NCBI RefSeq assembly: GCF_011386835.1
Contig: NC_088798.1
Location: 7,874,001-7,938,000 of the forward strand
Direction: 5' to 3'
Length of the DNA stretch: 64,000 nucleotides
Origin: Chrysemys picta bellii
Taxonomy: Eukaryota
Position numbers and translations under genes: made by a program. The number at the start of each line of letters is the position of its first letter. The first letter of the stretch is position 1. The notes under the pieces are model-generated. The model made no database searches. It worked only from the letters and a program-made list of their open reading frames with translations, and was not told the DNA's origin. Below, piece by piece: positions 19,728-22,911 of this stretch.

Positions 19728-19905
19728 GGAGGGATAGCTCAGTGGTTTGAGCATTAGCCTGTTAAACCCAGAGTTATGAGCTCAAGCCTTGAGGGGGCCA
19801 TTTAGGGATCTGGGGCAAAAATCTGCCTGGGGATTGGTCCAGCTTTAAGCAGTGGGTTGGACTAGATAACCTGCTGAGGTCCCTTCCAACCCTGATATTC
19901 TATAC
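19728..19905 (+). mobile_element. Tortoise PolIII/SINE, tail interrupted by the hAT transposon
   Basis: Same head and tail as 552-714; the hAT TSD TTCTATAC lies in its ATTCTA tail. Confidence 0.9.
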
Positions 19906-20010
19906 CACATGTGTCAAACTCAAGGCCCGCGGGCCACATCCGGCCCGCCATACAATTATATCCGGCCCGCGAAATCGTTTTATATATCTGTTTTTAATGG
20001 CCCTGTGATA

Positions 20011-20049
20011 TGACGCCCCAATAACACACACTACAAATCCCATGATGCA
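20011..20049 (+). promoter_or_regulatory. Putative transposase promoter cassette (TGACG, CCAAT, ZNF143/THAP11-type motif)
   Basis: TGACG 20011-20015, CCAAT 20018-20022, ACTACAAATCCCATGATGCA 20030-20049 resembling the ACTACAnnTCCCA motif, about 90 bp upstream of ATG 20141. Confidence 0.5.
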
Positions 20050-20189
20050 GTGCAATTGCCGCCAACGGCAAGCCGCGGTTCAAGTTCGCGGTCTGTTGAT
20101 GTATACAACGCTAATCTCAAATCAAAGCTAGACCCCAACAATGGCCAAGAGAAAACCGAGGCTTTCAAAGCCGGTGGGAGAATGAGTAT

Positions 20190-21935
20190 ATGTTTACTGA
20201 AATTGCAGGTAAACCAGTGTGTCTCCTTTGCGGGAGTAATATCGCTGTAATGAAGGAGTATAACCTAAGACGGCACTACGAGACGAAACATGAGAACAAA
20301 TTCAAAAACCTGAGCGCAGGACAGAAGCTACAAAAGGTAGAGGAGTTGAAGAAGAATTTGACATCCCAGCAGACGTTTTTCACCAAAGCAAAATCACAAA
20401 GTGAAGCTGCTGTGAAAGCAAGTTTCATTGTGGCCGAAGAGATCGCCAAATCAGGACGGCCGTTTACCGAGGGGGAATTCGTAAAGAATTGTATGATGAA
20501 AGTGTGCGACGTCCTTTGTCCAGATAAAACGCGAGCGTTTGCAAATGTAAGCCTCAGCAGAAACACTGTTGCTAATCGGGTCTGTGAGATGGCGACTGAT
20601 TTGAAAACACAGTTGATTGAAAGAGCAAAAGATTTTGTTGCATACTCCCTTGCCGTGGATGAAACTACTGACGCGACTGACACTGCACAGCTGGCGATAT
20701 TTATCCGTGGTGTGGATTCCAATTTGTGCGTAACAGAGGAAATACTGGACATTAAATCGATGCACGGGACAACGAAAGGAGAAGACATCTTTGGAAATGT
20801 ATTTCAAAGTGTAACCGACATGAAACTGCCGTGGGAAAAACTCGTTGGACTTACAACAGATGGCGCACCTGCTATGTGTGGTGAAAAAAATGGACTGGTG
20901 GGAAGGATGCGCTCAAAGATGCGGGAGGAGAACTGTGCCGGTGAGTTGACAGTGTATCACTGCATCATACACCAGGAATCGCTGAGTGCTAAAGTCCTAA
21001 AAATGGATCATGTGATGAACACTGTAACACAAACCGTCAACTTTATCAGAGCCCACGGTTTAAATCACCGCCAATTCCAGTCTTTTCTGCGGGAAATAGA
21101 TAGCGAATTTGGCGATATGCCATATCATACGGAGGTCCGGTGGCTAAGTCGGGGAAAAGTTCTCAAAAGACACTTTGAGCTGCGAGAGGAAATCTGCCAG
21201 TTCATGGACAGTAAGGGGAAAGACTGCACAGTTCTGCGGGATGAAAAGTGGAAATGTGAGTTGGCGTTCCTGGCTGACATAACGTCGCATCTTAGCGCTT
21301 TAAACCTTCAACTCCAGGGACGGGAGCACATAATAACCGATATGCATGATGCAGTGAAGGCATTTCAAGTGAAGCTGCGCTTATGGGAGACACAAATGCA
21401 CCAATGCAACTTGTCTCACTTTCCCTGTTGCCAAGTAATACGGAACCAAGAAAGTGCCACAGTTTTCCCAAATGCCACCTTTGCTGAAAAACTCAGCGCG
21501 CTGCGCACTGAGTTCGCACGGCGCTTCAGTGACTTTGAGGCACAGAAAAGTAACTTCGAGCTGCTTCGCAACCCATTTGCAGTCGATGTGGAAACCGCAC
21601 CTGTAGAAATGCAGATGGAGCTGATAGAACTGCAATGTAACGGGACACTGAAGGCAAAGTACGACACTGCGGGGCCAGCACAGTTCACTCGCTTCATTCC
21701 TGAAGCGATGCCGCAGCTCCGCCAACATGCGGCTCGAATCCTGTCCATGTTTGGCAGCACATATCTGTGCGAGCAGCTGTTCTCTGTGATGAAAATTAAC
21801 AAAACGTCACACAGGAGTCGCCTCACTGATGAACACCTGCAATCGATCCTGAGAATCTTCACAACACAGAACCTAACCCCAAACATAAACGAACTTGTTG
21901 CAAAGAAAAGACTCCAAGTATCAGGCTCTGACTAA
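20190..21935 (+). CDS. hAT transposase, 581 aa from internal ATG (BED-type Zn finger, DDE core, C-terminal dimerisation region)
   Basis: CLLC...NLRRHYETKH finger; AVDETTD (D), TTDGAPAM (D), HCIIH (CxxH), VRWLS (RW), STYLCEQLFS (E); no internal stop. The likely natural ATG at 20141 (MAKRK) is out of frame. Confidence 0.93.
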   Translation: MFTEIAGKPVCLLCGSNIAVMKEYNLRRHYETKHENKFKNLSAGQKLQKVEELKKNLTSQQTFFTKAKSQSEAAVKASFIVAEEIAKSGRPFTEGEFVKNCMMKVCDVLCPDKTRAFANVSLSRNTVANRVCEMATDLKTQLIERAKDFVAYSLAVDETTDATDTAQLAIFIRGVDSNLCVTEEILDIKSMHGTTKGEDIFGNVFQSVTDMKLPWEKLVGLTTDGAPAMCGEKNGLVGRMRSKMREENCAGELTVYHCIIHQESLSAKVLKMDHVMNTVTQTVNFIRAHGLNHRQFQSFLREIDSEFGDMPYHTEVRWLSRGKVLKRHFELREEICQFMDSKGKDCTVLRDEKWKCELAFLADITSHLSALNLQLQGREHIITDMHDAVKAFQVKLRLWETQMHQCNLSHFPCCQVIRNQESATVFPNATFAEKLSALRTEFARRFSDFEAQKSNFELLRNPFAVDVETAPVEMQMELIELQCNGTLKAKYDTAGPAQFTRFIPEAMPQLRQHAARILSMFGSTYLCEQLFSVMKINKTSHRSRLTDEHLQSILRIFTTQNLTPNINELVAKKRLQVSGSD

Positions 21936-22911
21936 ATAGGACAAGAAAATGGAATGTTATGATTTGTTATGATTATACTTTTGCTTTAAATTCAATTTTT
22001 TATTTATATTTTCAGATTTTTTAATATTCCAGCATGTACAGATTTTGAATGTATTGTATTGACAGGATATTTTTTTATGAAGAGCAAAATATTTTAAGTT
22101 GAAATGTATTTATTTTGGAATGATATCCTGTATTTTGGTTCATATTAATGGTTAAAAAACATAAATATTTAGTCTGTTAAATAAATGGTTATACTGTTCG
22201 GCCCGCGAGTTTTGAGTTTTGGCCCCCTGTGCAATTGAGTTTGACACCCCTGTTCTATACTAATTACTCCACCCATCTCTTCACCTCCCAGTGTGTGCCA
22301 TACAAATGACAGGGTTGACAAAACTCATTTAAAAAAAAAAAGTATGGCTGATTACCACAAGGAATATTTTTCATTGCATATAGCTATGCCTTTGGAGGTA
22401 CAGAAGGTCTAGAGCCGGGGCTTTGTAAGCCATATCTAAGGCCCTTCATTTTCAGTTTTTAAGGATCTTTACTGAAAAATTCTCAGGTTTTACAAAACCT
22501 ATTATTCGATTTTTATTGATTTTCATTCGAATTTTGCACCATTCAAGTACTAATTATGTTAAGAAAATCCAATGCCTTACATTGAGTAGGTTTGCTTATG
22601 TTAATAAACAATTAGTCTAGGTGTATACCTGAGTCTATTTGTTAAAGAAAGGCAATTTAGTGAAAGATACACACACACACACACACACACGTGTATGTAC
22701 TATTAACGTACAGTTCATGAAATAAACCACAACATTAAACTGCTTTCACTTTCAATACTCTTTACTTTTCTCTAGTTGTTGCTTTTTTCTGTCATCCCGT
22801 CACCCAATATTAACCCTGATATTTGTCCAGAAAACTGGGAAGTTAATTTTTTGCACTGATTTTCACTTATTTTAAGGGGCAATTTTAAACAAAATAAACA
22901 CTGAAAATGAA

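Follow-up and report, generated by a model that had tools for sequence, protein, structure and literature searches.

The painted turtle Chrysemys picta bellii carries on contig NC_088798.1 a hAT element of 2347 bp, which has both of its ends and encloses an open reading frame (ORF) of 581 codons, and it raises the question of where such an element came from, how recently it was inserted and whether it is still able to move on its own. It was studied within a stretch of 64,000 nucleotides (positions 7,874,001 to 7,938,000 of the forward strand; hereafter the window, to which all coordinates refer), where it occupies 19906-22252. An initial annotation had described it as a structurally complete hAT transposon of the Charlie group with an intact catalytic core and had proposed a recent horizontal invasion of the turtle lineage. 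We regard it as very probable that the element represents one recent insertion of hAT-6_XT, a Buster/Charlie-type family which was horizontally transferred into the deirochelyine pond turtles (Chrysemys, Trachemys, Malaclemys).

Horizontal transfer of hAT-6_XT into turtles is already published (Hassan, Galbraith & Adelson, Mob DNA 2024;15:7; PMC11008031), and the inference of the annotation is the conclusion of that paper. Hosts sharing highly similar copies were reported among turtles (Malaclemys, Trachemys scripta elegans, Chrysemys picta bellii, Dermatemys, Sternotherus and Mesoclemmys), fishes (Etheostoma, Thalassophryne, Scophthalmus, Syngnathus and Scleropages) and frogs (Xenopus tropicalis), while no full-length copy, defined by more than 80% homology together with target-site duplications (TSDs) and terminal inverted repeats (TIRs), was found in Emys, Terrapene, Mauremys, Gopherus, sea turtles, softshells, birds and others. 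Divergence in turtles was below 1%, presence/absence tests pointed to independent insertions in each species, and an aquatic parasite was suggested as a possible vector. The older assembly of C. picta bellii yielded no full-length copy either, for which incompleteness of the assembly was one explanation raised (PMC11008031).

In our analysis horizontal transfer is supported by three sets of sequence comparisons, namely near-identical copies at non-orthologous sites, a fish copy of 98.3% identity and a protein tree in conflict with the hosts. Copies from Chrysemys and Trachemys were 98.6-99.5% identical to the window copy over the full length; identity to the window element was 99.1% for L001 of C. 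picta bellii (TSD AGTTAGAG, longest ORF 602 codons), 99.0% for L003 of T. scripta (GCATACAG, 581 codons) and 98.6% for L005 of T. scripta (AGCTAGCA, 602 codons). Their flanks were unrelated to one another and to the window, each had a separate TSD, and private substitutions numbered three to five per turtle copy (0.13-0.21%). In the characiform fish Hoplias malabaricus a 5'-truncated copy (L002; TSD GTCTAAAC at the 3' end only, longest ORF 432 codons) was 98.3% identical over 1958 bp and lay in gap-free fish DNA adjoining an NLR gene, with the same 3' terminus as the turtle copies. CpG transitions made up 10 of its 22 private substitutions, and its sequence fits decay within the fish from a form nearly identical to the shared turtle sequence. 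Synonymous divergence (dS) between turtle and Hoplias copies was 0.017-0.023, the 3' untranslated region differed from that of the window copy at 3 of 317 bp, and the ratio of nonsynonymous to synonymous divergence (dN/dS) between copies, 0.5-0.8, indicates neutral decay after insertion.

The protein data agreed with this picture. A word-based search returned a C. picta bellii protein at 99% identity, whose 90% cluster includes two T. scripta proteins, then a Hoplias malabaricus protein at 94%, and at 79-83% clusters each uniting widely different fishes (Larimichthys, Scatophagus, Syngnathus, Scleropages, Polypterus, Serrasalmus, Scophthalmus, Leuresthes); further matches beyond the fishes came from snakes, a ray, a bryozoan, frogs and a bat. 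A quick maximum-likelihood tree (IQ-TREE, supported by the Shimodaira-Hasegawa-like approximate likelihood-ratio test, SH-aLRT, only) united turtles and Hoplias with 100% support inside a group of teleosts, discordant with the host tree. The invasion proposed by the annotation is thus upheld by near-identical, non-orthologous copies in two emydid genera as well as by the fish copy, its low dS and the discordant tree, and the taxonomic distribution was patchy, not continuous as the annotation had expected under vertical inheritance.

Other relatives were recorded beside these copies. The same tree contains close pairs across classes or phyla (Sebastes and the stingray Hemitrygon, Eleutherodactylus and the bat Phyllostomus, Pseudophryne and Pleurodeles, Erpetoichthys and Nerophis), and the bryozoan Watersipora falls inside a fish clade, which suggests that transfers have been far more numerous than the published cases. 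A Logan contig (L004:1-1203, SRR33529794) holds a copy 96.7% identical to the window element with an internal deletion joining element position ~290-320 to 1165 and with an insertion of fish-like type close to the 3' end. When metagenomes were scanned for the 5' end of the element, one contig of 1.2 kb was obtained (MDSO01014597.1, L006:1074-1163). It carries the 5' terminus of an element akin to hAT-6_XT (CATATGTGTCAAACTCAAGGCCCGCGGGCC...), with a diverged subterminal sequence of fish-like type; the contig probably stems from a eukaryotic host whose DNA was present in the environmental sample, and it is uninformative here.

By its sequence the window element is a member of the hAT-6_XT family, because the printed termini of two published representatives match both its ends: hAT-6_XT_MTT and _TSE start with CAGGGGTGTCAAAC..CAATTGCACAGGGGGCC..CGCGGGCCGAACAGTATAACCATT and end with GGCCCGCGGGCCTTGAGTTTGACACATGTG, a comparison made by eye at both ends of machine-read supplementary sequences which carry reading noise and are printed in the opposite orientation. 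The hosts fit as well, with C. picta bellii and T. scripta as members of the protein cluster and Scophthalmus, Syngnathus and Scleropages as next relatives, all of them named in the 2024 paper (PMC11008031). Within the superfamily, the element has the 8-bp TSDs, perfect here and in the three other turtle copies, and the short TIRs of a hAT transposon. In all five duplications (TTCTATAC, AGTTAGAG, GCATACAG, AGCTAGCA, GTCTAAAC) TA stands at positions 4-5, as it also does in the flanks printed in PMC11008031, and they are of the Buster type, for which the target consensus is nnnTAnnn (PMC3499496); the placement in Buster rests on this target site. As SPIN has been filed under both Buster and hAT-Charlie, these target sites also support the broad Charlie/SPIN grouping of the initial annotation. 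The annotation had seen a likeness to OC1 in the subterminal pattern; the element is accounted for by hAT-6_XT.

The structure of the element is compiled in Table 1. Its two ends have CA and 13 identical bases in common (15 of 18 positions), and the remaining CAT/GGG asymmetry is seen in every recovered copy as well as in the published sequences and is therefore a feature of the family, not a sign of decay. Observed/expected CpG was 0.88 in the element, compared with 0.24 and 0.23 in its flanks and 0.31 in the whole window, and did not exceed 0.53 in any other 2-kb bin of the window. Both ends, the perfect TSD and the uninterrupted 581 codons given by the annotation were all recovered, and its CpG counts (five in 20461-20520, none in 22321-22380) were exact. 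Its verdict of structural completeness held for each of the structural items it listed and for the catalytic core, and failed at the N-terminus of the transposase, where 14 bp are deleted and residues 1-21 are gone.

Table 1. Coordinates of the hAT-6_XT insertion, its parts and its insertion point in the window.
Feature	Position	Strand	Remarks
Left target-site duplication TTCTATAC	19898-19905		Identical to 22253-22260; central TA fits nnnTAnnn
5' terminal inverted repeat CACATGTGTCAAACTCAA	19906-19923	+	Terminus also in L001, L003, L005 and published representatives
5' subterminal and untranslated region	19906-20141	+	GGCCCGCG / CGGCCCGC motifs at element positions 19, 36 and 58; observed/expected CpG 1.18
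Ancestral start codon, followed now by a frame of only 14 codons	20142-20186	+	Alignment with L001, L003, L005; translation
581-codon ORF, residues 22-602 of the hAT-6_XT transposase	20190-21935	+	CCHH finger core, D157/D224/E528, CxxH, RW
AT-rich 3' untranslated region	21936-22234	+	AATAAA at 22180-22185; CGGCCCGCG motif at 22199-22207
3' terminal inverted repeat, reverse complement CAGGGGTGTCAAACTCAA	22235-22252	-	Matches the start of published hAT-6_XT sequences
Right target-site duplication TTCTATAC	22253-22260		Perfect 8-bp match to the left copy
Older CpG-depleted CR1-tailed repeat (short interspersed element, SINE, or CR1 3' end), its tail the hAT insertion point	19735-19905	+	Motif GGTCCCTTCCAACCCT, then GATATTCTAT

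The long ORF is predicted to encode a hAT transposase with a Hermes-like DDE fold. In an alignment of 35 relatives (49-83% identity) the motif columns were invariant or nearly so, and all DDE, CxxH, RW and BED motifs claimed by the annotation fell on such columns. They comprise the zinc finger C11, C14, H29 and H34, of which both cysteines and the first histidine are invariant and the second histidine nearly so, the catalytic residues D157 (20658-20660), D224 (20859-20861) and E528 (21771-21773), C258xxH261 (20961-20972) and R317-W318 (21138-21143). These numbers equal those of the intact protein of 602 residues (P0001) minus 21, in which the same positions are C32, C35, H50 and H55, D178, D245 and E549, C279 and H282, and R338 and W339. 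Pfam recognized the SPIN-DOC zinc finger (PF18658, 29.3 bits against a cut-off of 27.3 bits) and more weakly DUF4371, and the hAT dimerisation domain PF05699 gave a weak match (E 6.5e-4, 19.9 bits, below the gathering score of 21.4 bits). Conservation of the DDD/E and RW residues was also reported from an alignment to Hermes (PMC11008031). In an AlphaFold model of P0001 (mean predicted local distance difference test score, pLDDT, 83) a strand-strand-strand-helix-strand core bears D178 and D245, E549 lies in a C-terminal helix, and the finger forms a beta-beta-alpha core at residues 23-59 (strands 23-32, helix 44-59). The ten best matches of this model in the PDB by Foldseek were all Hermes (E 1e-9 to 3e-8, probability 1.00, 520-600 aligned columns), and the structural match runs through the hAT dimerisation region. 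Sequence searches of the PDB with P0001 (phmmer) and with the 35-sequence profile returned no meaningful match, so that Hermes was reached by fold comparison only. By analogy with the hAT family, such a transposase with its RNase H-like core would use its N-terminal zinc finger to bind the terminal and subterminal repeats, excise the element and reinsert it at nnnTAnnn sites, making the 8-bp duplication.

The window copy is defective at the start of its coding region. After the start codon L001, L003 and L005 read ATGGCCAAGAG-AAAAATTGATTCTGAAAACCGAGG, and the window copy reads ATGGCCAAGAGAAAACCGAGG, 14 bp having gone between two GAAAA repeats at about 20152-20156; such a loss would be a microhomology deletion between the repeats, and it puts the ancestral ATG at 20142 out of frame, with a stop at 20184-20186 after 14 codons. 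The long ORF restarts at Met22 (20190), 3 nt beyond the end of the upstream frame. Lost are residues 1-21 of the 602 (MAKRKIDSENRGFQSRWENEY), with a basic MAKRK stretch and a short helix (15-21) ahead of the finger which includes the nearly family-wide FQxRWExEY motif, and the zinc-finger profile covers positions 18-61 in the window ORF compared with 1-61 in the intact protein. Besides the deletion the window copy has three private substitutions, one in the 5' untranslated region and two at third codon positions (20582 and 21107, codon phase counted by hand). The run of A just past the start codon (20151-20156) was changed in two of the four turtle copies, by the 14-bp deletion in the window and by one additional A in L003, both of which break the frame, and it may be a mutational weak point at which copies are inactivated.

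Judging from its sequence, the window copy probably makes no full-length transposase and is most likely a still-mobilisable, effectively non-autonomous element, in need of intact 602-residue copies elsewhere in the genome, whose full-length transposase would be supplied in trans for its cut-and-paste mobilisation. It is unlikely that the window copy is autonomous, with leaky scanning or reinitiation starting translation at Met22 and the resulting protein of 581 residues being active. The ORF does depart from the other copies over residues 22-602 only at positions private to those copies, retains every catalytic residue and, as far as the model shows, keeps the CCHH finger core. However, the ATG at 20142, opening a frame which ends just ahead of Met22, would disfavour efficient initiation, and both the MAKRK stretch and the helix with the FQxRWExEY motif are gone along with part of the zinc-finger profile match.

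From the three to five private substitutions per copy, the window copy was probably inserted within the last few million years. Some points weigh against the picture of a recent insertion that is moved only in trans. The turtle neutral rate behind the age estimate is a general background value, and the absolute age is approximate. The painted-turtle genome paper (PMC4054807) gave no usable substitution rate. The high CpG content could in principle mean absent methylation rather than youth; youth is argued independently of CpG, because divergence between the copies is very low. It is also possible that translation from Met22 after the 14-codon frame, with the finger core retained, yields a truncated protein with some activity.

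Other origins for the copies have to be weighed against recent horizontal transfer. The NCBI protein name 'GTF2IRD2A-like' and the slow evolution of turtle genomes, as described in the genome paper (PMC4054807), would suit either vertical inheritance from a common ancestor of turtles and fishes or a domesticated GTF2IRD2-like host gene under purifying selection. Yet the TIRs and TSDs occur at five different non-orthologous sites (in Hoplias with a TSD at the 3' end only), the non-coding parts, including the 3' untranslated region with its 3 mismatches in 317 bp, are as conserved as the coding part, dN/dS of 0.5-0.8 speaks for a lack of constraint after insertion, a turtle-teleost dS of 0.02 would be incompatible with descent since the split of the lineages, and the distribution is patchy; vertical descent and domestication are highly improbable and were rejected. 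Near-identity of fish and turtle DNA is also the pattern expected from cross-species contamination or an assembly artefact. The chance of this is close to negligible, since the copies are embedded without gaps in CpG-depleted flanks typical of their hosts in three independent assemblies and the window, each has a TSD of its own, the window copy sits within a CR1-tailed turtle repeat, and the fish copy lacks its 5' part, has undergone CpG decay of its own (the 10 of 22 private changes) and adjoins a fish NLR gene; on the gapless flanks, the separate TSDs and the fish-specific decay this explanation was rejected too.

The likeness of the Chrysemys and Trachemys copies might furthermore derive from a single ancestral invasion or from hybrid introgression with long activity, and not from separate recent transfers. 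This agrees with a Chrysemys copy that has no fixed difference from the shared sequence and with one site alone which sets the two Trachemys copies apart from the rest, in turtles that evolve slowly. It is nevertheless a very improbable explanation, as no two of the four turtle insertions share an orthologous site, copies of separate genera resemble each other as closely as those of a single genome (0.38%), and the published presence/absence data show independent insertions per species without full-length copies in Emys and Terrapene (PMC11008031). Recent horizontal transfer into the deirochelyines, which would have taken place through a network of aquatic hosts, most of them ray-finned fishes, is the reading that we retain. 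A check of IMG/VR viral contigs as possible vectors found no relative of the transposase.

The insertion broke the CR1-tailed repeat immediately after ...GATATTCTATAC. Repeats of this kind are present elsewhere in the window in decayed form, one copy being the target of the hAT insertion; six copies that end in GGTCCCTTCCAACCCT with (ATTCTATG)n-like tails were counted (684, 13285, 19878, 26410, 40468, 49785), all CpG-poor, and tails of this sort characterise the 3' ends of CR1 or SINEs mobilised by CR1. No Pfam match was obtained for ten further long ORFs of the window, and ARAGORN and Rfam scans gave no match in and around the element.

Beyond the published record, the analysis adds a full-length copy of C. 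picta bellii with TIRs, TSD and an intact ORF of 602 codons in the newer assembly (L001, GCA_011386835.2), the Buster-type target duplications and the N-terminal break of the window copy. Hoplias is an unreported host of hAT-6_XT, not being mentioned in the 2024 paper or its supplements (PMC11008031), and its 3' region tentatively resembles the turtle form more than does the Etheostoma representative, as compared by eye with a printed sequence that contains reading errors. The contribution of the window itself is modest and consists of another dated copy, the correction of a broken start and intact full-length copies in the newer painted-turtle assembly; Hoplias as an additional fish host may narrow the search for a donor or vector. 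Few DNA transposons have been active recently in amniotes, and turtle genomes are slow and their repeats old; a transposon diverged by less than 0.5%, with an intact transposase and near-identical fish copies, is therefore a clear case of horizontal transfer and possibly a natural tool for gene transfer. It is conceivable, though rather doubtful, that hAT-6_XT is still transposing now in painted turtles and sliders, with the window copy, whose ends are perfect, polymorphic and mobilisable in trans, and that Hoplias points to a Neotropical characiform, or a shared parasite, as nearer to the donor than the darter of North America put forward in 2024. In that case hAT-6_XT would be one of very few amniote DNA transposons that are still live.

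Among known systems, the best structural match of the predicted fold is Hermes of Musca domestica. Hermes belongs to the Ac family with the target consensus nTnnnnAn. It shares with the element an RNase H-like DDE core into which a helical domain is inserted (PDB 2BW3, 4D1Q, 8SJD), an N-terminal BED-type finger and 8-bp TSDs, but its sequence identity to P0001 is only 12-14%. GTF2IRD2, in which a domesticated Charlie-type transposase is joined to TFII-I repeats, contains a homologous domain of transposase origin and is the source of the automatic protein name; unlike it, the window element has TIRs, TSDs and multiple non-orthologous copies and is without TFII-I repeats, and it is a transposon, not a host gene. 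Candidate fusions of host and transposase genes were observed in snakes, where three proteins of 704-985 residues from Ahaetulla, Laticauda and Thamnophis (P0041, P0043, P0044) combine a transposase of 65-67% identity with KRAB (PF01352), two of them also carrying C2H2 zinc-finger arrays.

The Buster hATs (TcBuster, SPIN; 'hAT-Charlie' in RepeatMasker) resemble the element in the 8-bp TSD with central TA and in the ZBED5/FAM200/GTF2IRD2-like RNase H domain families precomputed on its homologues, and SPIN has likewise undergone repeated horizontal transfer among tetrapods. The element is also like hAT-6_XT of RepBase (_MTT, _TSE, _CPB) from Trachemys, Chrysemys and Malaclemys, which agrees in terminal and subterminal sequences, a length of about 2.35 kb, a transposase of about 600 residues with DDE and RW, and turtle copies diverged by less than 1%, and for which horizontal transfer was also concluded. 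It differs in that the 14-bp N-terminal deletion is private to the window copy, that the newer assembly holds a full-length C. picta bellii copy with an intact ORF where the older one of the paper had none, and that Hoplias malabaricus now stands beside the hosts listed there.

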